Positions 6,002 through 55,122 are shown, counted from the stretch's first letter. The stretch is 64,000 nucleotides of DNA from Phyllobates terribilis (GCF_046119375.1 NW_027362772.1:279248001-279312000); one strand, 5' to 3'. Numbers and translations are program-made. The notes: a model not told the origin generated them from the sequence alone.

Positions 6002-6561
6002 AAATAAACAGGGAAAATGGGGTTATATCTATATATACACACACACACCACAGGCAATAAGATCACAATACTAAGGAGAAAATTTAATTAAATATGCAAA
6101 CAGAGCTTTCAGCCACAGTTCCCAGTGCATTTAAAACACTTGAATGTATATATACAAGCTGAATGCCTGTGTGTAAAAACAAACAAGTATGTAGACAGAG
6201 GTTCATAATGGGTTTGAATTGCTTGAATATATACAAGCTAGAAGTATGTGCATGAAAAAACACACCAGAAAAAGAGGGTCCAGAATACAAGGAAGTCAAA
6301 TAAATGCTTATTAATTCATGGATAATAGAAATCCTATGCAATAAGCGAATGTACATAACATCAATTTTGAAACCAATGATTTTTGTATATGCAAATGAAA
6401 TAAAAACACAATAGTATGTATGGTGCCATAGGCAATATACATTTCATATGCAAACAGGTGTACACGCAGAGCTGTCAGCCACAGTTCCCGATGGGTTTAA
6501 ATCTCTTGAGTATATAGCCTATGTGCCCACATTCAGGATTTGAATGCAGAAAATTCCTTAA

Positions 6562-7586: not shown

Positions 7587-10500
7587 TAATAACATAGTAA
7601 CATAGTTTTAAGGTTGAAGGAAGACTAATTCCATCTAGTTCAACCCATAGCCTAACATGTTGATCCAGAGGAAGGCAAAAAAAAAACCATATGGCAAACA
7701 CTAAGCTCCACATTGGGGAAAAAATTCCTTCACGACTCCATACGACAATCAGACTAGTTCCCTGGATCAACGCCCTATCAAGGAATCTAGTATATATAAC
7801 CTGTAATATTATACTTTTCAAGAAAGGCACCCATGCCCTTCTTAAATGTTAGAAGTGAATCACTCATTACAACATCATGCGGCAGAGAGTTCCATAGTCT
7901 CACTGCTCTTACAGTAAAGAATCCGCGTCTGTGATTATGACTAAACCTTCTTTCCTCCAGAAGTAGAAGATGCCCCCTTGTCCCAGTCTCTGGCCTCAGA
8001 GTAAAAAGATCAGTAGAAAGGTCTTTGTACTGTCCCCTCATATACTTGTACATAGTAATAAGATCACCCCTAAGCCTTCTTTTTTCCACAGTAAATAACC
8101 CCAAGTGTAATAACCTGTCTTGGTATTGCAGACCCCCCAGTCCTCTAATAACCTTGGTCGCTCTTCTCTGCACCCGCTCTAGTTCAGCTATGTCTTTCTT
8201 ATACACAGGAGACCAGAACTGTACACAGTATTCTAAGTGTGGTTGCACTAATGACTTGTATAGAGGTAAAATTATGTTCTCCTCATGAGCATCTATGCCT
8301 CTTTTAATGCATCCCATTATTTTATTTGCCTTTGCAGCAGCTGCCTGACACTGGCCACCAAACGTGAGCTTGTCGTCCACCAATACACCCAGGTCTTTTT
8401 CAGTTACAGTTTTGCCCAGTGTTTTACAATTAAGCATATAATTATACATTTTATTTCCTCTGCCCAAGTGCATTACCTTACATTTATCCCTATTAAAGCT
8501 CATTTGCCATTTATCAGCCCAAGCTTCTAGTTTACATAGATCCTCCTGTAATATAAAATTGTCCTCCTCTGTATTGATTACCCTGCAGAGTTTAGTGTCA
8601 TCTGCAAATATTGAAATATTACTCTGTATGCCCCCTACAAGGTCATTAATAAATATGTTAAAAAGAAGGGGGCCCAATATTGACCCCTGTGGTACCCCAC
8701 TGTTAACTGAGACCCAGTCTGAGTGTTTTCCATTAATAACCACCCTTTGCTTCCTATCACTGAGCCAATTCTTAACCCACATACATATATTTTCCCCTAT
8801 CCCCATTGTTCTCATTTTATGTATCAACCTTTTGTGTGGAACCGTATCAAAAGCTTTTGAAAAGTCCATATACACAACATCCACTGCATTTCCTTGGTCC
8901 AGTCCAGAACTGGCCTCCTCATAAAAACTGATCAGATTTGTTTGACAGGAACGGTCCCTCGTAAACCCATGTTGATATTGGGTCATGAGGTTATTCTTCT
9001 TCAGATACTCTAGTATAGCATCTCTTAGGAAACCCTCCAGGATTTTACCCACAGTAGAGGTTAAGCTTACCGGCCTATAATTTCCAAGTTCGGTTTTTGT
9101 CCCCTTTTTGAATATTGGCACCACATTTGCTATACGCCAGTCCTGTGGTACAGACCCTGTTATTATGGAATCTTTAAAGATTAAAAATAATGGTCTATCT
9201 ATGACGTTACTTAATTCCTGCAGTACTCGCGGGTGTATCCCATCCGGGCCCGGGGATTTGTCAACTTTAGTGATTTTTAGACGCCGCCGTACTTCCTGCG
9301 GGTTAAGCAAGTGACATTTAATGGAAAATTTTTGTTATCACTAATCATGTTTTCTGTCATGTGTTTTTCTTGTGTAAATACGGTTGAAAAAAAATCATTT
9401 AGCATATTGGCTTTTTCCTCATCCTCATCCACCATTTCACCCAGACTATTTTAAAGGGGGCCAACACTATCATTTTTTAGTTTTTTACTATTTATGTAGT
9501 TAAAGAATATTTTGGGATTATTTTTACTTTCTCTGTCAATGATTCTCTCTGCCTCAATCTTTGCTGCCTTGATTTGTTTTTTACATAATTTATTTAATTT
9601 TCTATATTTATTTAATGCCTCATCACTACCTACTTGCTTTAGTTCTCTAAATGCTTTCTTTTTGTCACTTATTGCGCCCCTTACAGCTCTATTTAGCCAT
9701 AGTGGTTTCCTCCTATTTCTAGCATGTTTATTCCCATAGGTCCTATTCAGGATGTTAATAAATGTCTTCCATTTGCTTTGTGTAGCTTTATGTCTCAGGA
9801 TATCGTCCCAGTTTATTGCACTAAGATCATCTCTCAACCGTTGGAAATTTGCCTTCCTGAAGTTTAGTGTCCTTGTAACCCCTCTACTACACACCTTATT
9901 GAAGGTTACATGAAAACGTATTATTTTGTGATAACTATTACCCAAGTGACCCCCAACTCGTATATTGGATATGCGGTCTGGCCTATTGGTTAATATTAGG
10001 TCTAGCAGTGCCCCCTTCTTGTTGGGTCCTGAACCAGTTGTGAAAGGTAATTGTCTCTCATAGTTGTCAAAAACCTATTACCTTTGCTTGAACTACATGT
10101 TTCTGTCCCCCAATGTATTTCAGGGTAGTTGAAGTCCCCCATAATAATGACTTCTCCTTGAGTCGCTACTTCATCTATTTGCTTTACGAGGATATTCTCC
10201 ACCGCTTCCATTATTTTTGGAGACTTATAACAAACCCCTATCAGTAATTTATTATTTTTTCCCCCTCCCCTTATCTCCACCCACAGGGGCTCTACATTTT
10301 CATTAGATTCACTTATATCCGCCCGCAAGACAGGTTTTAAGGATGATTTTACATATAAACACCCCCCCCCCCTCGTTTGCTTGTACAGTCATTTCTGAAC
10401 AGACTATAGCCCTGTAAATTAACTGCCCAGTCATGGCTCTCGTCCAGCCATATCTCAGATATCCCTACCATGTCATAATTATTTTCCAACAAAATTAATT

Positions 10501-10700
10501 CTAATTCCTCCATTTTGTTGGTGAGGCTTCTGGCATTAGTGTACATGCATTTTATGTATCTCTCTGTACCTCTATTCCTTCTTACTTTATTGACTGTTCT
10601 TACCCCACCCCCAATATCTTTATTTGTGCCCAGGTCACTATCTGCACTATCTTCCCCACCTATAAAATGAATACCCTCCCCCCAAATCCCTAGTTTAAGG
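7587..10700 (-). mobile_element. CR1 non-LTR retrotransposon, 5'-truncated near the start of ORF2; ORF2 frameshifted but a 507-aa RT segment is open
   Basis: APE endonuclease fragments at 10349-10711 (YTNARSL..MVGISEIW) and 10002-10328 (IIMGDFNYP), linker 9451-9945, and RT 7787-9310 (KSPGPDG, YRPVSLTS, QHGF, GVPQGSILGP, FADDTK). The CR1-type 3' end GGTTGAACTAGATGG...(TATGTTAC)n is at 7587-7650. Confidence 0.95.
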
Positions 10701-12041
10701 TTGGGGTTCATGTCAGCCTTGTATTGGCGGCTGACATGAAGCCCAGGTTAGTAATGGAGAGGCGTCTGTAAGACGCCCCCATTACTAACCCCGTAGCAAG
10801 GTTTTTTTAGGCTTTTTTCAATAAAGACATGGCCAGAATAAAGAAGTTAATTGAAATTAAATTACACACGGTTTTAATAATTTATTTATTATTCGTCTAA
10901 AACCCAAATCCCTCATCTCCGGTAAAGAAAATAAATTAATAAAAAACAACCATATCCCTCACTTGTCCGCCGTCATGACGTAATCCCAGTGTCCCACGGC
11001 GATCCGGGTCACTTCTACAGGAGTCACATCAATCACTGAAGTGACTGCTGTAGAAGACAGCACTGTACACTTCTTACAGGAGTATAAATCACTCCTGCCA
11101 GTGTACATTGCTGCCCTGCTGGCTGAATTCATCAGCTGATCAGCTCTAGTGACTTCATTTACTGCATCAGTGCTGTGTGGGAAAATTCCCACACAGCACC
11201 AGTGCCATAAAGTGAGATCCTGGAGCTCATTAGCTGATCTCCAGCTGATGAACTCCGGTGAACTCAGTCCCGGCAGCACAGCGATGTACACTGCCAGGAG
11301 CGAGCGTGCTCCCATCAGTGTACTGCTGGCCGTCAGGTGATCAGGTCGCTGGGGGACATCGGGAGGATGCCAGACAGGTGAGAATATGGTATTTGTTATT
11401 TTAATGTATATTTTTACTTTTTTCTTTTTTTACACCACGCACAGATGCTAGCTCGGCTGAGGAGACTACTTCTCCCCTCATCTGCCCCTCTCTTGCTGTT
11501 ATCATCGGGAGCGGCGGTCGGATGATGGGAGAAGTAGTCTTCTTCCCCAGCCGGGGTACCATTCTTTTGTGCGTTTTTGCAGCGTATTTGACTCACTGAC
11601 TTGAACGGAGTCCGTCAAATACGCAGATATATTTATACCTGCGGGCTTGCTGAGGTTCAATTGACCTCTGGGACATGGGGGCAATGTTCAAATGCCTGAA
11701 GATCCTTTTCATTGATACGACATTGAACAGCTTATACCACAGGCACATGTATTGTATTTTAAGAAAATACTGATGTAATTAGTTTGTCCCTTGACCCTCT
11801 TTTTTTTTTTGCTGAATTCTTACATAAAAATTTTTTAAAAAAGGTATTTTTATATTGATAGATTCATTGTTAAGAGCTATGGAGTTTTTTTCTAACCACC
11901 GTAACTAGGGATAGTGTAATAAAATAAAAATAAATAAATAAATAACACATTATTGTGTTATAATAAGAAAAAATAAGTGCACAATTAACATTTGAGGTTG
12001 AAATCGGTCAGATCAGCTTAGAGGTTGCGCTTGAACTCGTT

Positions 12042-12171
12042 NNNNNNNNNNNNNNNNNNNNNNNNNNNNNNNNNNNNNNNNNNNNNNNNNNNNNNNNNNN
12101 NNNNNNNNNNNNNNNNNNNNNNNNNNNNNNNNNNNNNNNNNNNNNNNNNNNNNNNNNNNNNNNNNNNNNNN
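12042..12171. other. Assembly gap (130 N)
   Basis: Run of N characters. Confidence 1.
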
Positions 12172-13755: not shown

Positions 13756-13782
13756 CTTTAAAAAACTAAGTGAAAACTTTAA

Positions 13783-15571
13783 GGCTGTGTGCCCACTATG
13801 CGTTTTTTATGCGTTTCCGCAGCGGCAATTGCGCTGCAGAAACGCTTAAAAAATGCTTGGCAGAAGGTCTGCCATGTTCCCCAATGATAATCTGCATGTG
13901 CTATGCACATGCTGCGGAAATTTCCGCTGCGGATTGTCATTGCGGAAAAATCCACAGCACTACCAATTATTTTGCGGAATCGCGGCAATTTGGCCGCCAT
14001 TGACTTGCATTGAATCGCTTAATATCGGCATGACTACATCTGTACATGCGGATATTAAGCGATTCAATGTGCGGATGGTACCCGTGTCTGGAGAAAAGGA
14101 GACTCTTCTCCAGACCCGGGTACCATAGTACCTGTAAAACAAAGAATTTAAAATAAAGAAAAAAACATTATACTCACCTTATGATGGCCCGCGGTCTTCT
14201 ATCTGGTACGTCTTGGCTCCCTGCTGGCTCGCAATGGAGTAAAAGGACCTTCCATGACGTCATTCAGTCATGTGACAGGTCCAGCGGTCGTGTGACCTGT
14301 CACATGACTAAATGACGTCATGGAAGGCCCTTTTACACCACCGCGACACACCGGGAAGACCCGAGAAGGAGACCGGGGGCCATCGGAAGGGGAGTATAAT
14401 GTTTGGTTTTTTTTACCATTTTTATTCTTTTTGTTAACTAACTTGGTCACACTATATAAAATCCATGCCGGTTGCATGGATTTATATAGTGTGACCTAGT
14501 TGTCAAGCACTTTCCTAGTGATGCTAAAAGTGCTTGTCAACCCACATGCAGAAATGCATGTGAAGAACGCTTCACATCCGCATGTCCCTGGCAGGAAAAA
14601 TGCATGTACAATCCGCATGTACAATCCGCATGCGTTTTTTTCTGCCAGGGAGATGCGGAAATGCTCAGGAAAAATCCAGAGCATTTCTGCATCGTGGGCA
14701 CATAGCCTTAGGCTGCGTGCCCACTATGCGTTTTTCAAGCGTTTTTGCCGCGGAATTTCCGCAGCGAAAATGCTTAAAAAAGGTTTGGTAATAAGTGCCC
14801 CATGGTCCCCAATGATAATCCGCATGTGCTCTGCACATGCTGGGGAAATTTTCACTGCGGATTATCATTGCGGAAAAATACACAGCATGTCCATTAATTT
14901 TGCGGACACTCAGCTTAATTGCCGCCACTGACTTGCATTGAAACGCATATTATCCGTGTCAGCACATTTGCACGCACGGATATTATGCGATTTAATGTGC
15001 GGATGGTACCCAGGCCTGGAGAAGAGGAGACTCTCCTCCAGACACGGGTACCATAGTACCTGTAAAAGAAAGAATTTAAAATAAAAAATAAAGATTATAC
15101 TTACCTTCCGATGGCCCCCAGTGTTTTCTCCGCTCCGTCTGGTCTGTTGTATGGGTCGCTGTGGTGTGAAGGACCTGCCACGACGTCAATGAGTCATGTG
15201 ACAGGTCACACCACCACGACCGATACAACACACCGGATGCAGCGGAGAAAAGACCGGGGGCCATCGGAAGTTAAGTATAATCTTTATTTTTTTATTTCTT
15301 ACCATTTCTATTCTTTTTTTTTAACTATTACTTGGTCACACTATATATGCCGGTTGCATGGATTTATATAGTGTGACCAAGTTGTCAAGCACTTTTCCAA
15401 GTGATGCTAAAATCGTTTGGAAAAGCGCTTGATAACCCGCATGCAGAAATGCATGCAAAAACGCTTCACAAACGCTTCTACCTGGCAGGAAAAACGCATG
15501 TAAAATCCGCATGCGTTTTTCCTGCCAGGGAAAAGCGGAAAAAATATGCAGAATTTCTGCATCGTGGGCAC
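13783..15571. mobile_element. Two head-to-tail PIF/Harbinger-type MITE copies (13783-14707 and 14711-~15571)
   Basis: TAA|GGCTGTGTGCCCACTATGCG ... GCATCGTGGGCACATAGCC|TTA|GGCTGCGTGCCCACTATGCG ... GCATCGTGGGCAC. The two internal sequences are homologous. Confidence 0.8.
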
Positions 15572-17978: not shown

Positions 17979-18646
17979 AGCGGGGATCTCTGACAGCCAC
18001 CTCTGCGGGGATCTCTGACAGCCACCTCTGCGGGGGATCTCTGACAGCCACCTCTGCGGGGGATCTCTGACAGCCACCTCTGCGGGGGATCTCTGACAGC
18101 CACCTCTGCGGGGGATCTCTGACAGCCACCTCTGCGGGGGATCTCTGACAGCCACCTCTGCGGGGGATCTCTGACAGCCACCTCTGCGGGGGATCTCTGA
18201 CAGCCACCTCTGCGGGGGAACTCTGACAGCCACCTCTGCGGGGGATCTCTGACAGCCACCTCTGCGGGGGATCTCTGACAGCCACCTCTGCGGGGGATCT
18301 CTGACAGCCACCTCTGCGGGGGATCTCTGACAGCCACCTCTGCGGGGGATCTCTGACAGCCACCTCTGCGGGGATCTCTGACAGCCACCCCTGCGGGGGA
18401 TCTCTGACAGCCACCTCTGCGGGGGATCTCTGACAGCCACCTCTGCGGGGGATCTCTGACAGCCACCCCTGCGGGGGATCTCTGAAAGCCACCCCTGTGG
18501 GGGATCTCTGACAGCCACCCCTGCGGGGGATCTCTGACAGCCACCCCTGCGGGGGATCTCTGAAAGCCACCCCTGCGGGGGATCTCTGACAGCCACCCCT
18601 GCGGGGGATCTCTGACAGCCACCCCTGCGGGGGATCTCTGACAGCG
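17979..18646. repeat. 26-bp GC-rich minisatellite (GCGGGGGATCTCTGACAGCCACC(T/C)CT), ~25 copies
   Basis: Direct tandem repetition, with two variant zones (CCT then CCC). Confidence 0.97.
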
Positions 18647-18999
18647 ACCAACCGGGAGGGGGAGGGGGGGGGTCTGCCAGCAAACTGCGGGGATCTGCCA
18701 GCGACCGGGGGAGGGATCTGCCAGCAACTGGAGGGGGGAAATCTTCCAGGGATCAGGGAGGGGGATCTGCGACCCCCATCATGTGCTGTGCTGACAGCTG
18801 TGCCAGGGTCTCGCAGTTACACGTAGCGGCTGCGACAGAACATGGCGGCTCCCTGGTCGCCCGGGAACACTGCGGCAGACACCGTGTGACCCGGACTGTA
18901 GAGCGGGGCGTCGCCTCAGCCCTGTCATGTCCTGTCCCGCCTAGTCTTCCTCCCCAGCCCTGTACATGGCCGTTATTCCAGCCTATACTCGGTGCTTAC

Positions 19000-25544: not shown

Positions 25545-28500
25545 TTATAACTCAGTCTTCTCGTTCTCTTCTGGGGATTTCTGCGTCGTCGATTCTAGAA
25601 CAACGAAGAACCAAAGAAAATGGAGAAAGAAAAACAATTAGAATGGAATGACCACGGATGAATGGAACAATGTGACACATAATAGAGGGCAATGCAGTTT
25701 TCTGGAGTCCTTAGAGAACATTCACTGCATTTTATGGTACCAGTTTTGTGCATAAGAATTTTTGGACAACTAATGCATACGGGGCAGAGAATATCCACAG
25801 CGTATATTGACCAGTGCTGCGGATTAGACATCTGCAGCATGTCAGCATAGACATTAATATGGCGTCGCTCCTCTGCAGATATAACATTTCCCACTCTTCT
25901 GGGAAGGATTTCTACAAGATTGTGGAAGTCTGTGGAAATTTTTGTCTCTTCATCCAGAAGATCCCCAAATTGTTCCCACAAAGCTGAAGCTACAATTGTC
26001 CACAATGTCTTGTGCTGAAGAATTAAGATTTCCCTTCACTGGAACTAATGGCCCAATGCCGACCCCTGATAACAGCCCATAGCATTATCCTCCTCCACCA
26101 TCTGTACAGCGGCACAATGCAGTCAGGGGGTAACGTCCTCCTGGAATCACCAAACCCAGACTCCTCCATCAGACGCAGATAGAGAAGTGCGATCAGTCAC
26201 TGCACAAAACACGTCTCCTCCAGAGTCCAGTGGTGGCGGCTTTACACCACTCCATCTGACGCTCGGCATTGTGCTTGGTGATGTACGGCTGCATGCAGCC
26301 GCTCGGCCATGGAGCTCCTGGCGGGGGCGCAGTGTTTGTACTGATACCAGAGGAGGTCTGGACTATGCAGTTATGGGGTCAGAAGAGCAGTGGTGACTTT
26401 CTTGCCCTCTGCTCCTCAGCACTCGGCCCCCCACTCTGTAATGATACAGGGTCTCCACTTTGTGGCCGAGTTGCTGCGGTTGCTTCCACCTCTCAATAAT
26501 ATCACTCACAGGTGATGGGGGAACAATTTCATGAACGGACTTGTTACACCAGAGTTCACCGTCTTTTCCAAATGTCTCAGGTTTTTTAGATTCGTGTTAT
26601 GCCATAAAACAAACAATCAGTACAAGCCCCTGAAACAACACCTGTTCCTTATGGAAGAGTCTACTTGCATTACTCCTGCTCAATACACTGCAAATTCATT
26701 GATACATAACTTACATACTCACAAACTTACAATGTGACCAGAGCATTAAAATTCTTGTGCATGCCCCGGATTACCTGCTTCAGAACCGGCCAGTTCTAGG
26801 ACCTTCTCTTCGGCTGGAGGCTCCGCTGCAGGTTCAGGTTCACTGGGCGGCTCTGCGTAAAAGAAATAAAATATAAGTCTATACATTCACTAGAAGTCAG
26901 AGGCAGTTAATGAGATCCATTATATTAGCCATGGCACCAACATGAACAGAGCCTAAAGGTGGAAAGAAATAAAGAAAGAGTCCTAACAGAATGCAAAAAG
27001 AATGTTTTTATAGTCGCTTACCTTCCGTGCCTTCTTTTATAATTTTCTCGCCAGTCTCTGTTGTATTGTTTTCTCCATTATCCGATTTTGTGGTGTTATT
27101 CTTCGGCTTGGGCTTAGGCTTAGGTTTGGAAAACTTTGCTTTGTTTAGCAGGTACTGGATTTCCCTGTCCAATGCCGCTAATTTTTGCTCAATATCTTTA
27201 GACAACAAGACTGGTTTTTCGGTGGCTGGTAATTTGGCTTGCTCTGCTAGTGTTTCATTTTTCCATATCTATGTAGAAAAAAGGTTAATAAATTCAATAC
27301 AAACTGCTATCAACCATCTAACTTCTGCTCTAAATTTCAGAGCAGTGTTCGCAGCAGCGGAACTTTCAGCGATCAGCAAGTTACCAATAGATTCATTCAG
27401 GCAGCCCTTTTAAGAGACGGGTGGGAGCAACAGAGTCGTGGTGCTAGAATGGCAGGGGGAAGTAACGGTTATTTTGTCATTTCATGCCATTTATAGTCAA
27501 ACTTTCATGGATTCCCTGAAAATCTCTCTTTTCTTACCCAGGTGTCATTAATCAGCTTTTCCAGTGTATTTAGCTCCACGTCTGTGAATATGGGGTCTTC
27601 ATCCATGAGCATTCTAGCACTCCTAAAGAGAAAGGGGAAAAAAATGTAAAAATTAGATAAGACATCAGAAGAGATTTCGCACCGTGGGAATGTGACTACA
27701 GAGGGTGTAAATTCGGCAGAGATTTAAATAAAAATAAAAAAATCATACTCTCAACCACTTTGTTGCTGCCATTTTGCTGGAATTTGTGCAAATAGTCATA
27801 GCAAAAAAAAAATTGGGATCCTGGCAAATCTGAATTTTTGGTGAAGGGCAGGGGTGGGATGGACGGGACGGTGACATCCCAATATATAGAGTATGGGGTC
27901 CTGTCTACCCAGTGAAGGGCTGGTGGGATGAATGGGATGGTGAGACCCTAATGTATAGAGTATGGGGGGGTCCTGTGTACACAGTGGAGAGCAGGGCGAA
28001 TGGACGGGAGGGTGAGACCCTAATATATAGTTTGTACAAAGTTGATGCTCTCATCTCTACATGTGACCCTGATTTTTTGGTAGAGGGGTTACAGTATGCC
28101 CAAGCTCCTTGGCCAATCAGCACAGACAAGTGCCCTTTTCAGCAGTATGAAGCCCCCAATAAATTATAGTGAGTGCTCTCAGTACCCACTGGTAAAATAT
28201 ACTTCTATACAGTTCACTTACTTCAGAAAAATAGAAGAATGATTGAGCAAACTATCCAGAGTCGCCAGTTTGTCTGGCCACTTTCTCCGCTCTTCAACCT
28301 TGAAAAATAATGACTTGCATGCCTTCTTCAGCTCACTTAGCTTGTCCTTCAACTCCTGCAATAAATGTGATCGATGGATGAAAATAATTTGCATAAGAAA
28401 ATTCCACCTTAACCTGAACCTGTCATATTGGGTCCGTGGACAGCAGGAACCAGTGACAGTAGGTCCTCGTCAGAATCTGAAAAACTGCAGCACTTTAAGT

Positions 28501-31500
28501 TTTAAAAAGAGTCGGGAACACTGAGAAAATGTGCAGAGTAGCTTTGGAGCGACTTGTACCTGCTCGCTTCAACTCGATGGGTGTAATGGGCAAATTCCCT
28601 TTTAATATGACTAACTACTATGCTATGATTAAGAGCGGTTAACCACTCGAAACGCGTCAGTTTTTTTTTTTTATATCCCCTTGTATGTGTTTTGTCATTT
28701 TTTAATGGATCTACAACAAAATAACTTTTTTACACTATCTACAGATGGATGTGTGGAATTTCCTCTTCTAATGACTAACTACATTCAAATCATGAATGCC
28801 CTTTATGCTCTATAAAGAGGTTCAAATTATATTAGAAGTTCCAGGTCTTAAAGGGAAAAAAAAAAAAAAAAAGCTATGCAAGATATTTTTTAATTAAACA
28901 CATATATTGTTTGGCTAAAAAGCATTTTTTCACAGAAGGGTTTCCTTTAGCATTTGGCTTCTACATCCTTTATGTATCACAGTACATAGCAGACAGGAAA
29001 ATGAGATACCAGTGAATCTAGTGAGCTCTTCTGAAGATTTGTATCTTTTATATCTAATAAGATTTATTGACCATTTAAAAGTTAATTTAAGTGATCCTAA
29101 ATAAGTAGGGGGGGGGTCACAGATTCTGCCACTTACTGGGGAATTTCACTCTTCACTCATTCTATGTACTGTGATGAAAAGAGGCTGTAGAAAACAAAAA
29201 TGGTCTAGCATTATTTTTTTTAAGGAAACCCTTGCAAAAAAATGATTCAAATGTTTAGAATAATAAGACACAACCAGAATATTCCATTTCACCCCGTTTT
29301 TAATCAAGTACCTTAGTAGTTGCTGTATATCCCTCATCTTCTAGCCAGGCTGAGGCTTGGCTAAGCTTGCTGGAGATCTCCTCCCTTTGCTCCTTTGTAG
29401 ACACTTTACGGAACTCACTTTGATCTAGTTTATCCTAAGGCAATAAGAGGACACCATATTATAGGAAGATCATAAATTAACATATATTCACAATGTAAGA
29501 AACGAACGGGGCTGAAGAGGCAGCTCCGTTCAATGTGTCGCAGGCTCTGCCAGGGGCTGCAGAACAGCTCCCAGTACCTGAGAATAGTACAGAGCTAAAC
29601 ACAGCTGATCAGTTGGGGTTCCTCCAATCTGGCATTGATGACCGATCCTAAGGACAGGTCTTCAATAATATACGCTCAGACAACCCCTTTAAATCCCACT
29701 CGCATGTAAATAAAGGTTTCATACCTGCGTCTCAAAAATAAAAGCTTCTAAGCTATTTGCAGCTTTTTCTCGTTCGTGTTTCGCCAAGTCTCGTTCAGTG
29801 AGTTCCTGCAACCTAGAGGCAAGGAGACAGATTACTCTTCATAGTCACATTCAGAGGATGTTACATCCCAAGTATTACTCTAAGAGGACAGGTAGTTAAG
29901 ACTTCTTTCCAATTTACCAACTTAGGGACAAATCATGGAAACATTTAAAGGGGTTTTCGGTTCTCTGTAAACGATCACGTGTCCATTCTAAGGGGCTGAG
30001 GGTATGAAGATAACAGAGTAACCCTGCACTTCACTCTCTTCAGATCTTTTCTTAATAATATACTCACTTTTTAACCGATTTCTTCATGTCTTCTTCATTA
30101 AGATCTGGTATATCATTAATGGTCTGATCGGCTCCGATCTCATCGACAAGTTTCTGCTTCTTGGGAGCAGCGGGTTTTTTAGCCTCTTCTTCGGGTGGCT
30201 TTGCAGATTCTGCATCTTTTGCCGTTTCTTCTTTCTCCTTAGTGTCCTACCAGAGTCAATAGACCATAGACTTTTAGTAACAATCCAGCAGCTGATCGTT
30301 TTGGAAATCAACTCCGTAAACGAGTATTAAGGGGGTTGTCCAGGACTTTGGAAAGTGATGGCCTATTCTTTAGAGGAGATTTGTGGGGGTCTGACATGCA
30401 ACACTTCCTACAGTCAGTCGTCATCTGGTCTGGCAGCCACTGAAGTTACAGAGTGTAAAATGCCCGGACACCACAGCGACGTGTAGTGGCCATTCTCTGG
30501 TACTACAACTCAGCTCCTCTTGACGTGAATAGGAGCCGAGCTGCACACAATGTACAGCGCCGTGATCTTCAGGCTCTGAACATCCAACCGCCATAGGACC
30601 TGCAAAGAGCTGATCATTGGGGGGTGCCAGGTTTCGGACCCCCTCAAATCTGCTCAATGGGGGTACCAGGTTTCGGACCCCCTGAAATCTGATCAATGAG
30701 GGTGCCAGGTTTCGGACGCCCATCAATCTGATATAGGCTTTCAATATCAAAGTCATGGATGAACCATTTAAGTGCATTTTGTGGGTCACCTTGTTCTCTT
30801 TTTCATTCTCCTTTTTCTCTTCTGATTTTTGGTCCTCTGCTTTAGCGTCTGAATCCTTTTGGTTGCTCGCTTGTGTTGTTGACTCTTGATCTTCTTCTTT
30901 AGTGGCCTCAGTTGGCACCTCTTCTTCTTCCTGTAAAATACATTTAAAAAAATTTGAAACAGGATGGTCCGAGGCCAAACTTCATAAACTTTAGTAAAGA
31001 GACACAGCGTAGAATGACATTCATGGGAATCAGCCCAGAAATACAGATATATGCTGGTCGTTTTATAAGATGCCACATAAGTAGATCTGAATATGATGTT
31101 TGGGTGATAAAGTCTTACCTGGACACTCTCTGTGGCATTTTCCTTACTCTCCGTAGTGGAACTTCCTCCTCCGAACAAACTTGATATAGTATTTCCTAGT
31201 TCTGAAGAGGCAGAAGTAAAAGATACACAGCACATGAAAAAAGAATATAAATGTACAAGACCATGAAAAAATACCCCAAACAAACAGACATTCTGTAGCC
31301 AGTATTATTTTCCCCTACACCTGGACCACCCTTTTCTTTCTCATCATATTTTGTCTTATTAATCTGAGAAATATGATCTGGTTCATGCAGGCGAAGTGTC
31401 ACTTACTCGTTAATGTAGATTCCTGCTCTGGCTTCTCTTCTACCAGCGTCTCAAACACAGCTTCCACCTAAACAGATTGGAGAAAAATTCAAAAATTAAT

Positions 31501-37500: not shown

Positions 37501-40500
37501 GTGTGCAGTGATGGGAGGCCATGCATACCAGCATTGGGGGATGAGGGGCGCCGTGCATACCAGCATTGGGGGATGAGGGGCGCCGTGCATACCAGCATTG
37601 GGGGATGAGGGGCGCCGTGCATACCAGCATTGGGGGATGAGGGGCGCCATGCATACCAGCATTGGGGGATGAGGGGCGCCATGCATACCAGCATTGGGGG
37701 ATGAGGGGCGCCATGCATACCAGCATTGGGGGATGAGGGGCGCCATGCATACCAGCATTGGGGGATGAGGGGCGCCATGCATACCAGGATTGGGGGATGA
37801 GGGGCGCCATGCATACCAAGATTGGGGGATGAGGGAGCAATGCGTACCAGGACGGGTAATTTACCAGTAGCTGCTGAATTTCCCACCGTAGGATCATACT
37901 CTGTTCAATAAGTTTTCCCGTTTTTTTTTTAAATTAGGAACCTCGGCTTATACTTGAGTATATACGGAACATTAGACTGGTGGCGGCAAGATTATTTTGT
38001 ATGTGTATGAGGGGAATTGTCCACTTCTGGGAACTTTTTTTTTTTTTTTTTTTTTTGTGCATCATTTTTGCAGTTCGGTTTCATAAGAAAAGAAAAAAAA
38101 AAAAGAAGAGGTACACTATTTGACTTGAACAGGCTCTTTATTTCCATACACATTCAAATTTAATGTGGTCTGTGTTCATAGATCAGCGGAGATCACAAAA
38201 ACGCAATGAAAAACAATGAAAAGAGAGAGAAACTCTCCCTTTGGACTATCAGAAAGAGCTCACTCACGGAGGCTCAGTTAACTCATTCTGCAGCCAGTAA
38301 TAGAAAGTGCAGCACAGAGGCCATAGAAGGCAAGGGGTGCAAAAATTTTAAAGAAACCCGACTGCAACTAAATAACTATTTCTAACCAAAAATAAATGAG
38401 AAGGTGTGTCCAAACTTTTGGTCTGTAATTTAAAAGATTTTTCTGTATTTTCATGAGTTTGAAAATTGTACATTCACACTGAAGGCATCAAAACTATGAA
38501 TTAACACATGTGGAATTATATACTTAACAAAAAAGTGTGAAACAACTGAAAATATGTTTTATATTCTAGGTTCTTCAAAGTAGCCACCTTTTGCTTTGAT
38601 GACTGCTTTGCACACTCTTGGCATTCTCTTGATGAGCTTCAAGAGGTAGTCACCGGAAATGGTTTTCACTTCACAGGTGTGCCCTGTCAGGTTTAATAAG
38701 TGGGATTTCTTGCCTTATAAATGGGATTGGGACCATCAGTTGTGTTGTGCAGAAGTCTGGTGGATATACAGCTGACAGTCCTACTGAATAATTTGTATTA
38801 TGGCAAGAAAAAAGCAGCTAAGTAAAGAAAAACGAGTGGCCATCATTACTTTAAGAAATGAAGGTCAGTCAGTGCGAAAAATTGGGAAAACTTTGAAAGT
38901 GTCCCCAAGTGCAGTTGCAAAAACCATCAAGCGCTACAAAGAAACTGGCTCACATGAGGACCGCCCCAGGAAAGGATGACCAAGAGTCACCTCTGCTTCT
39001 GAGGATAAGTTTATCCGAGTTACCAGCCTCAGAAATCGCAGGTTAACAGCAGCTCAGATTAGAGACCAGGTCAATGCCACACAGAGTTCTAGCAGCAGAC
39101 ACATCTCTTCAACAACTGTTAAGAGGAGACTTTGTGCAGCAGGCCTTCATGGTAAAATAGCTGCTAGGAAACCACTGCTAAGGACAGGCAACAAGCAGAA
39201 GAGACTTGTTTGGGCTAAAGAACACAAGGAATGGACATTAGACCAGTGGAAATCTGTGCTTTGGTCTGATGAGTCCAAATTTGAGATCTTTGGTTCCAAC
39301 CACCGTGTCTTTGTGCGATGCAGAAAAGGTGAACGGATGAACTCTACATGCCTGGTTCCCACCGTGAAGCATGGAGGAGGAGGTGTGATGGTGTGGGGGT
39401 GCTTTGCTGGTGACACTGTTGGGGATTTATTCAAAATTGAAGGCATACTGAACCAGCATGGCTACCACAGCATCTTGCAGCGGCATGCTATTCCATCCGG
39501 TTTGCGTTTAGTTGGACCATCATTTATTTTTAAACAGGACAATGACCCCAAACACACCTCCAGGCTGTGTAAGGGCTATTTGACCAAGAAGGAGAGTTAT
39601 GGGGTGCTACGTCAGATGACCACAGTCACCAGACCTGAACCCAATCGAGATGGTTTGGGGTGAGCTGGACCGCAGAGTGAAGGCAAAAGGGCCAACAAGT
39701 GCTAAGCATCTCTGGGAACTCCTTCAAGATTGTTGGAAGACCATTTCCGGTGACTACCTCTTGAAGCTCATCAAGAGAATGCCAAGAGTGTGCAAAGCAG
39801 TCATCAAAGCAAAAGGTGGCTACTTTGAAGAACCTAGAATATAAGACATATTTTCAGCTGTTTCACACTTTTTTGTTAAGTATATAATTCCACATGTGTT
39901 AATTCATAGCTTTGATGCCTTCAGTGTGAATGTACAATTTTCAAAGTCATGAAAATACAGAAAAATCTTTAAATGAGAAGGTGTGTCCAAACTTTTGGTC
40001 TGTACTGTACATACAAAAAAAATAAAATATAAATTAATAAATTATTATGATTAATAATAAATACTTTGCATGTATTATTGGTTAAAAAAATGTAGTGATT
40101 GAAAAAAAAAATCATAACTGGGGTAAAAAACTAATTAATTTGTCTTGCCTATATATTCTCAGTTAACTCATTCTGCAGCCAGTAATTGCAATATTTCTAA
40201 AGAAACCCAATTACAAAAACTAGACAGACTTTTGTTTAAAAAAAAAAAAAATGACCCAGTAATTTTTACCAAGCAATGAACGCCGTACGAATGAAACCCA
40301 AACACCGATGAGAGTTGCTTTGAATGGTGAGAAAACCAATGCGGTCATTCAAATCTACAACTCATCCCAGATAAAGCAAGCCCTTGTATGGTTATGACAA
40401 AGGATAAAAAAAAAAAAAAAGTTATGGTTTTTGAAAGAAGAGGAGGAAAACAAAATGAAAGTGCAAAAATTAAAATTGCCCATGTCCTTAAAGAGTTAAA

Positions 40501-43500
40501 GTCATTAATAAAATACCTTGCAATAGATCCAATTTTATATGTAATACACTGGAGTATGGAGGAGGGTGGGGACGCTCACAGGCTTACTCCAGGAAAAAAA
40601 TATTATAGTAATTTATTTACAATTTACCTGCAAATTCTTCTGCAAGAGTTCTGGTGTAGTTGAGCGTCATGGCTAGAAGTTCTTCAGGAGAATACAACAG
40701 TTCTCTGAAAGCATAAAATACAAAGAAGGATCAGAAGAACTGCAAGCAAGTGAGTGCACACAGGCAAGAGAGCCTGCGGCTGTCAGAGCATGCTGAGAGT
40801 TATAGTCTCCCATAAATATACCACCATTATACTTCTATTATCAGAAGAAAAAAAAAAAAAGTACGTACTCCGACAGCTTGAAAAGAACCGTGCCCCGCTC
40901 GGCCTCCCTGACAACACTGTACTCAGGGAACCGGCTTCTAAAACTCTCAACTTGGGGGTTTTCTGCCCGCTTTCCGATCAAGTCTTGGAAGTAACGGAAC
41001 GTCACCTTGGGATTCTTAGCTGCCTGCGGAGAATAAAGGACACAACAAAACTTAGTCGGTCCCTGCTAGTCTGTACTTCAGAGGACGACCCCATCCAAAA
41101 ATGCATGATAGGAGCAATAATGGCATCTGTGCGAGTAAACATCACTAGTTTTATTTTTCACTCATCCCTTTAAGAATAATTTTCCTTGCGCCTGACGGAT
41201 ACAAGTCACTTACCAGCCCTACAGCACTGTCCCCAAAGAGACGCTCATTATCTTTTAAAGCTACGGCACAAGGCGTCTTTCTCCTCGACTCCCTGAGAAA
41301 TAAAAGGTTAACAAAAACATTAAATTGGAAGTCTGCTGTGAAGCTTGCAGAACTATGAATGCAGCTCTTGATTAGAGCACAGTCTAACAGACCCCATTTT
41401 TTTTTTCAGAACTGCAGCACATAACGCCAAAAATGTAAAAAACGTACAAGCAAGATCTCCCCCACGTCCTACTAAATTAAACGCTCCCTCCTTTCTGGCC
41501 GACAGGACTTACTTGTTTAATACAATTTCCATAGGGACTCCGGGTTTTACTATTGCAATTTTCATCCATTCAGAGCCCAGATCCACAGACATGACGGCCA
41601 CAGAGTCTGGAGAGAAGAACATCAGGTTGTCAAAAATCTGCACCAGAGGAATAGTGAGAAGGAGCCAGAATCATCCCGCCCCCAGTGCACCTTCAGCCTC
41701 ATTTACATAACTATTCAAAGTGGATTTTCTCAGTAACAGGATTTACATTTGCAATCAGGACACAATAAGTGAACTTATATTTTTCTATCCTATCCAGAAG
41801 TGTCCTCAGTTTGGTGGCCTTAAAAAGCCTGACAAGTTCTCTTTAAATAGGGGTTGTCCTGTTGAGATAAACCTTTCTTTATTGAAGCCGGTGCAGTGAT
41901 CAGGGGGTCACCACGCGGATGGATTTCCGAGCCCCGGGGGAGCATCTATTGTAGGGCAATGAAAAAAGCTGAAGTATCACATCTCCACGAGTAATGCAGA
42001 GGAGAGACAGCCATTGTTCAGGGTAAGAGGAGATTTCATGCTGGGGAGAAGCCGACAAGTTAAGGAGAAGGTCTCCCTCACGATCCGATGTTTTTTTCCC
42101 ACATTGTAGTATTTTGTATGGCGCTACTATAGTTCTCAGCCTCGCCGCCCCTCAACATGAGATACGCTGCCTGATGGTCCCTCTACACCAAGATGCGCCG
42201 TCTCGCTGCCCAATGATACAACTTTCAGCCTGAGACTTTGCACTAAAAACTTTAGCTCAATATGAGAACTTCAAGCAACTTTTCAATTATGGGGGAGAGG
42301 ATAGAATAAAAGCTTCATCCTCTCAACCCAAAAGTGTCAAGAAAAGAATAAATAAATAAATAAATAAAAAAAGGTTTTAAAATCTGCAGCAAAGGTTTGG
42401 GGGTGTCAGTGGTTTGTTTGCAAGCTTCAGAGCAGGAGGCTCTGTGCACTGTAAGCCTGTGTAAAGTCATAACACAGTCATGTGAAGACAAAGCAACTGA
42501 CGCACCTCAGAGCAAGACATTGCGGCTGTCACCCATGGCACCCAGTTTATACGGACTGTCTGGAGCAACCGGCTGCGATCCGGAGGACACCATTTGCATT
42601 TAAGTTGTGAGCTTTGCAAATAAAAGACATTTAAGTTGAAGTTTCCTTGGGTCACTGCCCCATTACCGCACAGTGTGAACACCGCCGCACTACAATGTGT
42701 GTATATATAATATACACTGCTCAAAAAAATAAAAGGGAACACTTAAACAGAATATAACTCCAAGTAAATCAAACTTCTGTGAAATCTAACTGTCCACTTA
42801 GGAAGCAACACTGATTGACAATCAATTTCACATGCTGTTGTGCAAATGGAATAGACAATAGATGGAAATTATTGGGAATTATCAAGACACCTTCAATAAA
42901 GGAGTGGTTCTGCAGGTGGGGACCACAGACCACATCTCAGTACCAATGCTTTCTGGCTGATGTTTTGGTCACTTTTGAATGTTGGTTGTGCTTTCACACT
43001 CGTGGTAGCATGAGACGGACTCTACAACCCACAGAAGTTGCTCAGGTAGTGCAGCTCATCCAGGATGGCACATCAATGCAAGCTGTGGCAAGAAGGTTTG
43101 CTGTGTCTGTCAGCGTAGTGTCCAGAGGCTGGAGGCACTACCAGGAGACAGGCCAGTACACCCGGAGACGTGGAGGGGGCCGTAGGAGGGAACCAACCCA
43201 GCAGCAGGACCGCTACCTCCGCCTTTGTGCAAGGAGGAACAGGAGGAGCACTGCCAGAGCCCTGCAAAATGACCTCCAGCAGGCCACAAATGTGCATGTG
43301 TCTGCACAAACGGTTAGAAACTGACTCCATTAGGGTGGTATGAGGGTCCGACGTCCACAGATGGGGGTTGTGCTCACAGCCCAGCACCGTGCAGGATGCT
43401 TGGCATTTGCCACAGAACACCAGGATTGGCAAAGTCGCCACTGGCGCCCTGTGCTCCTCACAGATGAAAGCAGGTTCACACTGAGCACATGTGACAGACG

Positions 43501-46500
43501 TGACAGTCTGGCGACGCCGTGGAGAGCGATCTGCTGCCTGCAACATCCTTCAGCATGACCGGTTTGGCAGTAGGTCAGTAATGGTGTGGGGTGGCATTTC
43601 TTTGGAGGGCCGCACAGCCCTCCATGTGCTCGCCAGAGGTAGCCTGACTGCCATTAGGTACCGAGATGAGATCCTCAGACCCCTTGTGAGTCCATATGCT
43701 GGTGCGGTAGGCCCTGGGTTCCTCCTAATGCAGGACAATGCCAGACCTCATGTGGCTGGAGTGTGTCAGCAGTTCCTGCAAGATGAAGGCATTGACGCTA
43801 TGGACTGGCCCGCCCGTTCCCCAGACCTGAATCTGATTGAGCACATCTGGGACATCATGTCTCGCTCCATCCACCAACGTCACGTTGCACCACAGACTGT
43901 CCAGGAGTTGGCGGATGCTTTAGTCCAGGTCTGGGAGGAGATCCCACAGGAGGCCATCCGCAACCTCATCAGGAGCATGCCCAGGCGTTGTAGGGAGGTC
44001 ATACAGGCACGTGGAGGCCACACACAATACTGAGCCTCATTTTGACTTGATTTAAGGACATTACATCAAAGTTGGATCAGCCTGTAGTGTGTTTTTCCAC
44101 TTTAATTTTGGGGGTGACTCCAAATCCAGGCCTCCATTGGTTAATAAATTTGATTTCCATTGATGATTTTTGTGTGATTTTGTTGTCAGCACATTCAGCT
44201 TTGTACAGAACAAAGTATTCAATGAGAATAGTTCATTCATTCAGATTCTTTATGCACAGCCAAATGTCTGAATCAATCTGTACCAAATTCAGGCACTTCG
44301 GAAGAGAAATATTTTTTGCAAACAGGTAAACTAAAAAGACTTGTGTGAAGTCGGGAAGTTCTACTAGTACTTTATAACAGGAATAATCTGCGATTGCAGA
44401 AAATAGAAACGTTTTATTCGGCGCCATTACTGCTGAGAACACGAGTGCACAAACCCTTCATTAACACAACTACTTCTCCGGGCCAAAAGAATCATTCAGC
44501 TCTCCGCAAGAGTCTCAGAATAAGGGTGGAACAGGGACAACGATCCCATCGCAGTGCATGGACTGGCCGGCGACTCTGCTCACCCGAGCATGTAGTTCTA
44601 TGCAGCTGTCACGCTCGGGTCAGCAGAGCCGCCGGCCAGTCCGTGCACTAGGAAGCGATCGTGGTCCGCGTTATACGGCCGTCTGATTGCGCTCTAAGGC
44701 TAGTGATCACTGTGCCAGTAACAGCACGAGGACAGGAAACCACACTGCATTGTTTCCATGAGCTTTGCAAACACTGATTGCAAATTATACAGGAGCAACA
44801 CGGACATCCTGTGTGATCAGAGGCGGGAAAACTGCCAAACCAGGACACCTGCTGCTACTGGAGCCAGCAGGACTACACGACTCCTAATCTGACACACACA
44901 GGTTTAGCTTTGGGTACACGGGACCTATCGGGTGTGGAAATTACACTCTGAAATAACCTTAAAAGTCTCAAAGTGAGTCTCCGTAATAAAAGTAGTTCCT
45001 ACATGTATCTACCAGCTTCCCCATTCACTTCCCCTTACTCTTGACTAATTAAAGGAGACTTGTCACCGGATCAGAAGTGCTCAGAGTTTGCTCTTTTATT
45101 TCCACTGATCCCCTGAGTTTTCTGTTTTTTGTATTATTTAAATCCGCCATACGGCTCCAGAGATAAGGACCTTTTTATTTAGTGCTACTGTTATGATCTT
45201 TACTAAGGGGGCGTGGCTCGTAGTAATTATGTAAAACTACTAAGCCACACCCCATATGATCCTGTAAGCCACACCCCCTTAGTAGCAGCAAAATAAAAAA
45301 GGCTCACATCTCTGGAACCATACGGCGGATTGAAAAAAAGAAAAAAACAGTAGTCAGGGGATCTGCAGGAATAATATAGTAGCAAAAACTGGGCACTTTT
45401 TACCTGTCTACAGGTCTCCTTTAACCCCTTAATGTCCTAGGGTGTATTAGTACACCCTAGGCCATCACCCCCGATTCAGCACGGGCTCTGGCACCGAGCC
45501 CGTGCTGAACCGGGCACATGTCAGCTGACATGTGCCCGCAACAGCAGCGGGTGGAAACGCGATCCACCAGTGGCTGTTAACCAGTTAAATGCTGCTGTCA
45601 ATCTTTGACAGCTGCATTTAACACCGCCGCCATGGAAGCGCGGCATTAGCCCCGCCATCGGTGACCCCGTCACATGATCACGGGTCACAGATGGGTGGGC
45701 ATGACAACACGGAGTCTGCAGCAGACCCTTGTGGTTGTCATGTCGCGCTTGCTATGAGCGCCACCCAGTGGTCGGCACTCATAGTAAGTGAGCATTTCTG
45801 CTACACAGAGGCGATCTGCTCATCACCTCTATGTAGCAGAGCCAATCAGATAACTGCAGCTTCTAGTCTCCTATGGATATTATTGAAGCATGCAGAAAGT
45901 GGAAAAAAATATTTTTAAAAATATTTAAAAAAAATAAAATAAAAGTTTAAATCACCCCCCTTTCGCCCCATTCAAAATAAATAATAAAAAAAAAAATCCC
46001 ACATACACATATTTGGTATCGCTGGGTTCAGAATCGCCCGATCCATCAATATAAAAAAATAATTAGTCTGATCTGTAAACGGCGTAACGATAAAAAAAAT
46101 TCTAAACGCCAGAATTACGTTTTTTTTGGTCATCGCAACACTGAAATAAAATGCAATAACGCGCAATCAAAACATTGAATCTACCCCAAAATGATATCAA
46201 TAAAAACGCCAGCTTGACGCGCAAGAAATAAGCCCTCACCCGGCCCCAGACCCCGAAAAATGGCGCCATTTTCTTTTTTTTAGCAAACTTTGGATTTTTT
46301 TCACCACTTAAATAAAAAAGAACCTATACATGTTTGGTGTATATGAACTCGTAATGACCTGCAGAATAAGAATAGCAGGTCAGTTTTAGCATTCAATAAA
46401 CGTGGTTAAAAAAAAAAAAACACAAAAAACACAAACCGTGGAATTGCATTTGTTTTGCAATTTCACCGCACATGGATTTTTTTTTTCCTGTTTTCCAGTA

Positions 46501-47624: not shown

Positions 47625-47828
47625 CTTGCAGGGGTCACGCCACAAATTATATACACCTGCACAATGTAAATGGTATACATGAGCGGAAAATCCAAAGTCC
47701 CTGAGACCACAGACTGGAAGAGGCCCAAGAGGCCAGCAAGAACGTGCTGACAGTCTCCAGGGGAAAAGATGGCCACCTTATTGTAAAGTGGCACAAAACA
47801 CTTCAATCTTCACCTAGTGACTGAGGCC

Positions 47829-50800
47829 TGATCCTCAGTGCGGCGCACAGGACTGGTGATCCCCCGTCATCAGTGTGGCGCACAGGACTGGTGATCCCCC
47901 GTCATCAGTGTGGCGCACAGGACTGGTGATCCCCCGTCATCAGTGCGGCGCACAGGACTGGTGATCCCCCGTCATCAGTGCGGCGCACAGGACTGGTGAT
48001 CCCCCGTCATCAGTGCGGCGTACAGGACATGAGATCCCTCATCATCAGTGCGGCGTACAGGACTGTCACCCATCATCATCAGTGCAGCGTACAGGACTGG
48101 TGATCCCTCGTCATCAGTGCAGCGTACAGGACTGAGATCCCTCGTCATCAGTGCAGTGTACAGGACTGAGATCCCTCATCGTCAGTGCGCAGCGTACAGG
48201 ACTGAGATCCCTCATCGTCAGTGCGCAGCGTACAGGACTGAGATCCCTCATCGTCAGTGCGCAGCGTACAGGACTGAGATCCCTCATCGTCAGTGCGCAG
48301 CGTACAGGACTGAGATCCCTCATCGTCAGTGCGCAGCGTACAGGACTGAGATCCCTCATCGTCAGTGCGCAGCGTACAGGACTGAGATCCCTCATCGTCA
48401 GTGCGCAGCGTACAGGACTGAGATCCCTCATCGTCAGTGCGCAGCGTACAGGACTGAGATCCCTCATCGTCAGTGCGCAGCGTACAGGACTGAGATCCCT
48501 CATCGTCAGTGCGCAGCGTACAGGACTGAGATCCCTCATCGTCAGTGCGCAGCGTACAGGACTGAGATCCCTCATCGTCAGTGCGCAGCGTACAGGACTG
48601 AGATCCCTCATCGTCAGTGCGCAGCGTACAGGACTGAGATCCCTCATCGTCAGTGCGCAGCGTACAGGACTGAGATCCCTCATCGTCAGTGCGCAGCGTA
48701 CAGGACTGAGATCCCTCATCGTCAGTGCGCAGCGTACAGGACTGAGATCCCTCATCGTCAGTGCGCAGCGTACAGGACTGAGATCCCTCATCGTCAGTGC
48801 GCAGCGTACAGGACTGAGATCCCTCATCGTCAGTGCGCAGCGTACAGGACTGAGATCCCTCATCGTCAGTGCGCAGCGTACAGGACTGAGATCCCTCATC
48901 GTCAGTGCGCAGCGTACAGGACTGAGATCCCTCATCGTCAGTGCGCAGCGTACAGGACTGAGATCCCTCATCGTCAGTGCGCAGCGTACAGGACTGAGAT
49001 CCCTCATCGTCAGTGCGCAGCGTACAGGACTGAGATCCCTCATCGTCAGTGCGCAGCGTACAGGACTGAGATCCCTCATCGTCAGTGCGCAGCGTACAGG
49101 ACTGAGATCCCTCATCGTCAGTGCGCAGCGTACAGGACTGAGATCCCTCATCGTCAGTGCGCAGCGTACAGGACTGAGATCCCTCATCGTCAGTGCGCAG
49201 CGTACAGGACTGAGATCCCTCATCGTCAGTGCGCAGCGTACAGGACTGAGATCCCTCATCGTCAGTGCGCAGCGTACAGGACTGAGATCCCTCATCGTCA
49301 GTGCGCAGCGTACAGGACTGAGATCCCTCATCGTCAGTGCGCAGCGTACAGGACTGAGATCCCTCATCGTCAGTGCGCAGCGTACAGGACTGAGATCCCT
49401 CATCGTCAGTGCGCAGCGTACAGGACTGAGATCCCTCATCGTCAGTGCGCAGCGTACAGGACTGAGATCCCTCATCGTCAGTGCGCAGCGTACAGGACTG
49501 AGATCCCTCATCGTCAGTGCGCAGCGTACAGGACTGAGATCCCTCATCGTCAGTGCGCAGCGTACAGGACTGAGATCCCTCATCGTCAGTGCGCAGCGTA
49601 CAGGACTGAGATCCCTCATCGTCAGTGCGCAGCGTACAGGACTGAGATCCCTCATCGTCAGTGCGCAGCGTACAGGACTGAGATCCCTCATCGTCAGTGC
49701 GCAGCGTACAGGACTGAGATCCCTCATCGTCAGTGCGCAGCGTACAGGACTGAGATCCCTCATCGTCAGTGCGCAGCGTACAGGACTGAGATCCCTCATC
49801 GTCAGTGCGCAGCGTACAGGACTGAGATCCCTCATCGTCAGTGCGCAGCGTACAGGACTGAGATCCCTCATCGTCAGTGCGCAGCGTACAGGACTGAGAT
49901 CCCTCATCGTCAGTGCGCAGCGTACAGGACTGAGATCCCTCATCGTCAGTGCGCAGCGTACAGGACTGAGATCCCTCATCGTCAGTGCGCAGCGTACAGG
50001 ACTGAGATCCCTCATCGTCAGTGCGCAGCGTACAGGACTGAGATCCCTCATCGTCAGTGCGCAGCGTACAGGACTGAGATCCCTCATCGTCAGTGCGCAG
50101 CGTACAGGACTGAGATCCCTCATCGTCAGTGCGCAGCGTACAGGACTGAGATCCCTCATCGTCAGTGCGCAGCGTACAGGACTGAGATCCCTCATCGTCA
50201 GTGCGCAGCGTACAGGACTGAGATCCCTCATCGTCAGTGCGCAGCGTACAGGACTGAGATCCCTCATCGTCAGTGCGCAGCGTACAGGACTGAGATCCCT
50301 CATCGTCAGTGCGCAGCGTACAGGACTGAGATCCCTCATCGTCAGTGCGCAGCGTACAGGACTGAGATCCCTCATCGTCAGTGCGCAGCGTACAGGACTG
50401 AGATCCCTCATCGTCAGTGCGCAGCGTACAGGACTGAGATCCCTCATCGTCAGTGCGCAGCGTACAGGACTGAGATCCCTCATCGTCAGTGCGCAGCGTA
50501 CAGGACTGAGATCCCTCATCGTCAGTGCGCAGCGTACAGGACTGAGATCCCTCATCGTCAGTGCGCAGCGTACAGGACTGAGATCCCTCATCGTCAGTGC
50601 AGTGTACAGGACTGAGATCCCTCATCGTCAGTGCAGTGTACAGGACTGAGATCCCTCATCGTCAGTGCAGTGTACAGGACTGAGATCCCTCATCGTCAGT
50701 GCAGTGTACAGGACTGAGATCCCTCATCGTCAGTGCAGTGTACAGGACTGAGATCCCTCATCGTCAGTGCAGTGTACAGGACTGAGATCCCTCATCGTCA

Positions 50801-53539: not shown

Positions 53540-55122
<1,583 letters not shown>

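Follow-up and report, generated by a model that had tools for sequence, protein, structure and literature searches.

Can a hammerhead ribozyme lineage in a frog genome have exchanged the C3-G8 pair of its catalytic core for A3-U8, and would such an exchange be a trait of the lineage or the private decay of a single copy? The question is raised by a short insert in a 64-kb window of Phyllobates terribilis (GCF_046119375.1 NW_027362772.1:279248001-279312000, one strand; 'the window' denotes this whole stretch). The reading that we favour, to which we would assign a probability of roughly 0.6, is that the insert is a solo copy, flanked by target-site duplications (TSDs), of a non-autonomous repeat family with a hammerhead of the type found in Penelope-like elements (PLEs), that its A3-U8 core is inherited and has been kept by selection, and that the copy at this locus (the 28.6-kb copy) is itself inert. 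On this best reading, the minimal PLE-type hammerhead and the U3-A8 core variants are already known, and what is new are the core letters A3-U8. A bolder proposal, that A3-U8 is a third natural and catalytically competent 3-8 pair, fixed in a many-copy frog Penelope or retrozyme lineage that CUGANGA- and Rfam-based censuses have missed, is tentative and in our estimate has the odds clearly against it. The features concerned are these:

28607-28618 (no strand): left TSD ATGACTAACTAC, a direct repeat in the sequence; family copies diverge at 28619/28621.
28619-28770 (+): non-autonomous retroelement unit of 152 bp, a solo copy from an abundant repeat family (~150 bp), delimited by contig depth.
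28622-28661 (+): minimal type-I hammerhead-like module with helix I GCU/AGU, the sole descriptor match in the window.
28625-28632 (+): core box A3-U4-G5-A6-U7-U8-A9 plus a bulged A (A3 = 28625, U8 = 28630, bulged A = 28632).
28633-28648 (+): helix II GAGCGG/CCACUC with a UUAA loop, a palindrome in the sequence and a hairpin present in the minimum free energy (MFE) fold.
28649-28658 (+): G12-A13-A14, ACGCGU as palindromic helix III, and C17, with the cut predicted 3' of 28658.
28661-28672 (+): T12 run directly 3' of the module, variable in length between copies.
28771-28782 (no strand): right TSD ATGACTAACTAC, a direct repeat in the sequence; eight contigs of run X1 diverge just past 28770.
5958-6003 (-): second, decayed A3/U8 hammerhead-like module, which has only the hammerhead module in common with the 28.6-kb copy.

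The edges of the repeat family were defined independently of the direct repeats, using Logan contigs from two DNA runs (X1 and X5, from different samples and studies) that were placed on 28500-28900 at a likeness of at least 80% (n = 88 and n = 53, respectively). The summed depth of the contigs rises from about 9 in the two flanks to 140-1000 strictly inside 28619-28770, and the non-fitting ends of other family copies start at 28616-28621 on the left and just past 28770 on the right (eight contigs, X1). These edges are the inner edges of the two 12-bp repeats, which are perfect and enclose 152 bp; hence the repeats are a TSD around a discrete unit, which is one copy of an abundant family with units of ~150 bp. 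The 152-bp insert between 12-bp direct repeats that a first-pass annotation, made from the sequence of this DNA, had described is thereby confirmed, its inner edges being the family boundaries. Both junctions of the insert are seen in two individuals, and an empty-site joint was not seen among the placed Logan contigs of these individuals. The possibility that the 12-mer forms part of a 164-bp tandem unit was considered and rejected, because other copies diverge right after 28770.

Copies of the family vary in ways that the contigs make visible. The family majority differs from the 28.6-kb copy at 28717, 28733, 28735, 28738 and 28743, and in other copies deletions of 6-8 nt occur at 28661-28667. 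A sharper right end and a slightly ragged left end fit a retroelement on the + strand, which is the hammerhead-sense strand. Since the 28.6-kb copy spans the predicted cut site, it would have been reverse-transcribed from uncleaved RNA. Another genomic copy contains an inverted junction, 28628/28740, represented by one contig in each run; inverted head-on arrangements have been described for PLEs, and at the 28.6-kb locus such an arrangement is absent, as are a pseudo-LTR and a partial tandem. Just upstream of the left TSD, ~30 bp (28576-28606) resemble the last 27 bp of the element (28744-28770), with a local score of 9.5 versus 6.3±1.1 in shuffles, a score reached by 36 of 2000 of them. This likeness could be due to chance, to a preference for targets that resemble the 3' end of the element, or to an older, decayed terminal fragment.

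Read from 28622, the module has the type-I hammerhead elements in register, as had been claimed for it. Helix I is formed by GCU (28622-28624) and AGU (28659-28661), 3 bp including a G·U, and encloses a core in which A3 is followed by U4 (28626), G5 (28627), A6 (28628) and U7 (28629), and U8 by A9 (28631). Helix II consists of the strands 28633-28638 and 28643-28648 around the loop 28639-28642, with G28633-C28648 as the pair 10.1-11.1. Next, G12-A13-A14 (28649-28651) leads into A15.1-CGCG-U16.1 (28652-28657) and C17 (28658), so that the cut that the first-pass annotation had placed 3' of C28658 falls at the expected position. The invariant hammerhead letters U4, G5, A6, A9, G12, A13, A14, A15.1 and U16.1, together with H17, are all in register between 28626 and 28658. 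The consensus letters C3 and G8 are not matched, an A standing at 28625 and a U at 28630, likewise across the family, and A3 and U8 retain the potential for Watson-Crick pairing with each other. Two further points were absent from the first-pass annotation. Helix II comprises five pairs and a C·A mismatch (28636/28645), which no placed family contig corrects at 5% or more of depth, and the 2-bp helix III would close a loop of 2 nt. In a monomer, the latter is sterically impossible, and a second molecule is therefore needed.

How far such a layout departs from chance was gauged with a descriptor that accepts any Watson-Crick 3-8 pair and tolerates no more than one mismatch in a helix II of five or more pairs. 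It further demands G10.1-C11.1, GAAA, U16.1, H17, a helix I of 3 bp and a helix III that is palindromic. The full descriptor matches the 64-kb window only at the 28.6-kb site and has no match in 100 dinucleotide-preserving shuffles; the hammerhead-like motif at 28622-28661 exceeds chance. The same result bears on an explanation in which the module is not derived from a hammerhead at all and its conserved boxes serve, for example, reverse-transcriptase recognition or as a promoter, the hammerhead register being a look-alike. Consistent with this explanation, the module lies at the 5' end of the unit and adjoins the T run, and the Rfam hammerhead models gave no match, at the gathering score or at E up to 10, to the whole window or to either of its two modules. 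MFE folds do not favour a hammerhead either: the monomer fold predicted by ViennaRNA has -7.4 kcal/mol and is not the hammerhead fold (-4.3 kcal/mol), and in the predicted dimer the two molecules are joined by the helix II palindrome GGUUAACC and not by helix III. For so small a motif, thermodynamic folding is weak evidence either way. A mere look-alike would, however, have to account for core letters, bulge, G10.1-C11.1, helix II and palindromic helix III that are all in register, for the absence of descriptor matches from the shuffles, and for the report of about 9,000 minimal PLE hammerheads of the same architecture in Xenopus tropicalis (PMC4209133); we regard it as highly improbable.

A short palindrome of the GGTTAACC/AACCGGTT type is present in both modules of the window at different places, namely at 28639-28646, inside helix II of the 28.6-kb copy, and at 5946-5955 on the minus strand, just after the cleavage site of the copy at 6 kb. 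ViennaRNA pairs two molecules through this type of palindrome.

The silence of Rfam has a counterpart in published descriptors, which use CUGANGA; a module with the core AUGAUUA would thus be missed by standard surveys, and the earlier statement that CUGANGA searches would overlook this variant holds, Rfam giving no match even at E up to 10. Its architecture is nevertheless familiar. In the minimal hammerheads of PLEs, which are of type I, helix II measures 6-8 bp and helix I is short, a nucleotide separates positions 9 and 10.1, G10.1-C11.1 is conserved, and 15.2-16.2 as well as loop 3 are palindromic (Cervera & de la Peña 2014, PMC4209133). All of these traits are present at 28.6 kb: the A28632 bulge, G28633-C28648, a helix II of six positions, a short helix I and ACGCGU at 28652-28657. 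PLE minimal hammerheads are thought to act as dimers, and canonical ones cleave poorly in vitro even as dimers (PMC4209133); what the first-pass annotation had said of palindromic stem III hammerheads in PLEs is stated in this source. Also shared are the tiny palindromic helix III, which implies a dimer, and massive dispersal as single motifs in frog genomes, the motifs of X. tropicalis being mostly single (PMC4209133). In contrast to the published PLE hammerheads, the core at 28.6 kb reads AUGAUUA and not CUGAUGA, and no PLE ORF or pseudo-LTR is linked to it at the locus. The unpaired nucleotide between A9 and G10.1 recalls hammerheads in which A9 is followed by an extra nucleotide (De la Peña & Flores 2001, as cited in PMC4209133) and whose core, as cited there, is the canonical C3-G8 one.

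Exchanges at positions 3 and 8 are themselves well precedented. C3 and G8 pair, and several natural hammerheads have U3-A8 in their place by covariation (Perreault et al. 2011, PMC3088659), as the first-pass annotation had assumed in speaking of compensatory swaps, and a U3-A8 covariant core is present in the Cercyon PLEs of Schistosoma (PMC4209133). Variants covarying at 3-8 have been reported to be active in vitro (Przybilski and Hammann 2007, as cited in PMC3088659), and primary work on exchange of the 3-8 pair (PMC1986816, PMC2271363) is cited in PMC3088659 and PMC3884650. Like the U3-A8 hammerheads (PMC4209133, PMC3088659), the module at 28.6 kb has another Watson-Crick pair at 3-8 and retains the rest of the core; unlike them, it has the orientation reversed, with a purine at 3 and a pyrimidine at 8. 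A check of the literature for A3-U8 among Penelope hammerheads, which the first-pass annotation had proposed, found U3-A8 published and no report of a natural A3-U8 hammerhead, an absence of evidence only, given text searches of a limited literature.

From which element the unit derives is less directly visible. The first-pass annotation had suggested looking for linked Penelope ORFs with reverse transcriptase (RT) and GIY-YIG endonuclease, and none is present within the 64-kb window. The sole RT ORF (7787-9310, minus strand) is preceded by an APE-type endonuclease, Exo_endo_phos_2 (10002-10328), and hence belongs to a LINE; as a candidate Penelope element it was rejected on account of this upstream endonuclease and the lack of GIY-YIG. 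The LINE remnant as a whole spans 7513-10711 (minus strand), its endonuclease being followed by an intact-looking RVT_1 ORF of 507 aa; the hammerhead module that lies 1.8 kb downstream has no relation to this remnant. A Penelope ORF is not required of a solo non-autonomous unit, and we infer the Penelope affiliation from an architecture that matches the published PLE minimal hammerheads.

A second source is possible, if doubtful: the unit may belong, as a monomer, to a tandem family of non-LTR retrozymes that spreads via circular RNA, and not be a terminal piece of an autonomous Penelope element, which would depart from the favoured reading only in the source. Metazoan non-LTR retrozymes are likewise short, AT-rich and non-autonomous with a type-I hammerhead, which in amphibians requires dimerisation (PMC7229834; Li, Clavereau & Pollet 2026 preprint). 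Retrozyme families of Xenopus are related to PLE terminal repeats, and their dispersed monomers are numerous, with 44% lying in introns (Li, Clavereau & Pollet 2026 preprint), a picture that would fit the solo unit at 28.6 kb. Retrozymes have canonical cores, however, and their defining features are tandem arrays and circular RNAs, whereas the 28.6-kb unit is known from DNA and is solo with a TSD, and its sharp ends do not lie at the predicted cleavage site. Tandem joints of the ~150-bp unit were not found among the placed Logan contigs. A terminal piece of a Penelope element accordingly remains our preferred, if inferred, source.

Irrespective of the source, A3/U8 is a lineage trait of the repeat family and not private decay. 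Within 28619-28648, which covers both A3 and U8, neither run has an alternative letter at 5% or more of depth. Many variants of that frequency are found further 3', both in the second half of the module and in the remainder of the unit; CpG-decay variants at 28653-28656 (ACGCGT) occur in other family copies. Among copies at least 80% alike, such uniformity can reflect recent amplification instead of selection.

A more distant comparison is provided by the second module, at 5958-6003 on the minus strand, which is A3/U8 like the 28.6-kb module and contains GCTATGAYTAAG and GAAACGCGTYAG in common with it. Over the module the two copies are alike with z=7.3 (0 of 1000 shuffles), and over the remainder with z=1.6 (86 of 1000), which is not significant; nhmmer likewise confines the likeness to the module. 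Homology of the whole elements was rejected on these grounds, and a global MAFFT alignment therefore over-aligns the T-rich remainder. In the core boxes GCUAUGAYUAAG and GAAACGCGUYAG, the two copies differ only at N7 (U/C) and H17 (C/U). These are the two positions that a hammerhead leaves free. The second module thus keeps the invariant core letters, with U17, and its helix II differs extensively from that at 28.6 kb, one position being compensated (A-U to G-C) and the C·A restored to C-G. An independent copy with the same swap had been claimed for 5958-6001, and the A3/U8 letters and the likeness of the module bear this out; as a hammerhead, however, the copy has to be regarded as decayed, because it has G·A at 10.1-11.1 and a helix I of only 2 bp. 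Searches of the 64-kb window with BLAST, nhmmer and patterns revealed no module copies beyond these two. A near-perfect, MITE-like hairpin palindrome at 13780-13870, the arms of which carry GAAACGC and GCGTTTC around GCAATTGC, surfaced only through a partial match in the search for GAAACGCGT.

Uniform A3/U8 letters would also be expected if the core had been dead on arrival, that is, if the founder of the family was already inactivated at positions 3 and 8 and the family spread by mobilisation in trans without any need for the ribozyme. The A-U complementarity would then be a coincidence and the uniformity a matter of young age. PLEs of the Naiad and Chlamys types do proliferate without canonical hammerheads, the 28.6-kb copy stems from uncleaved RNA, helix I is weak, the C·A mismatch in helix II is family-wide, and given two substitutions about one third of the letter combinations would pair. 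It is the position of the changes that speaks against an inactive founder: the sole two departures from the 11 invariant letters are the partners of a known tertiary pair. By our own reckoning, two random changes in these 11 letters would strike the 3-8 partners in 1/55 of cases and leave them able to pair in 3/9, that is, in about 0.6% by chance, which favours the view that the 3-8 pair was under selection when the source copies were active. Furthermore, the otherwise diverged second module keeps A3/U8 and varies in the core boxes only at N7 and H17. An inactive founder is therefore, in our judgement, rather unlikely.

Hence, we hypothesize that the first ~43 nt of the insert are a Penelope-type minimal type-I hammerhead module, in which the tertiary Watson-Crick pair C3-G8 of the catalytic core has been replaced by A3-U8 in a frog lineage, and that the replacement was inherited and, most likely, maintained because selection acted on the 3-8 pair of the source copies. 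In these, the module may act weakly as a dimer and be cut after C17, the ACGCGU palindromes of two molecules forming a helix III of 6 bp. The 28.6-kb copy, by contrast with such sources, stands alone, within an intron of a HYOU1-like gene of the Hsp70 superfamily and antisense to it; as a solo monomer with weak helices, it is almost certainly inert. One contig from a run that is only guessed to be RNA covers 28682-28832, crossing the element edge uncut and stopping short of the predicted cleavage site, on which it is therefore silent. Scans of metagenomes with two patterns for the module gave 0 matches; frog DNA is not expected there.

The host gene is outlined by stop-free segments on the minus strand, which from ~41.7 kb down to ~26.7 kb give colinear matches to the HSP70 profile. 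The best solved relative of one of its exons is Hsp105, and the gene belongs to the Hsp70/Hsp110 superfamily, which is consistent with HYOU1. Exon-like segments at 30067-30246 and 28221-28469 flank the insert and thus place it in an intron. Read in hammerhead sense, the module is on the + strand and antisense to the host gene; it cannot be part of that pre-mRNA, and an effect of the 28.6-kb copy on the gene is not likely. Where the first-pass annotation had called the copy antisense to HYOU1, the antisense orientation stands, with minus-strand Hsp70-superfamily exons on both sides, and the identity of the gene can be upheld only to the Hsp70/Hsp110-type level.

Either outcome for the A3-U8 core would be informative. 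If it cleaves, nature has explored the 3-8 pair beyond C-G and U-A, which would support the idea that G8 acts through its ribose and through pairing and not through base identity, and surveys based on descriptors and Rfam overlook a whole lineage of retroelement ribozymes. Should a competent A3-U8 lineage exist, the numbers of hammerheads given for amphibian genomes would be too low. Without cleavage by this core, the family would be a clean natural case of a hammerhead-bearing repeat that spread after loss of the ribozyme, which matters for the open question whether PLEs require their hammerheads in order to transpose.

Several other features of the window were recorded along the way. An assembly gap of 130 N occupies 12042-12171. 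Tc1/mariner-type transposase remnants are found at 42815-44033 (+), with HTH_Tnp_Tc3_2 and DDE_3, and at 54263-54781 (-), with a Sleeping Beauty-type HTH. Large and very regular GC-rich minisatellites lie at 47827-51620, 59854-61174, 52381-53467, 17982-18649, 57285-57845 and 37518-37850, with units of 36 bp (x107), 32 bp (x41), 34 bp (x32), 26 bp (x26), 24 bp (x23) and 32 bp (x10), respectively. Their units match mostly at 97-99% (88% in the 24-bp array), and the arrays have long stop-free frames on both strands.
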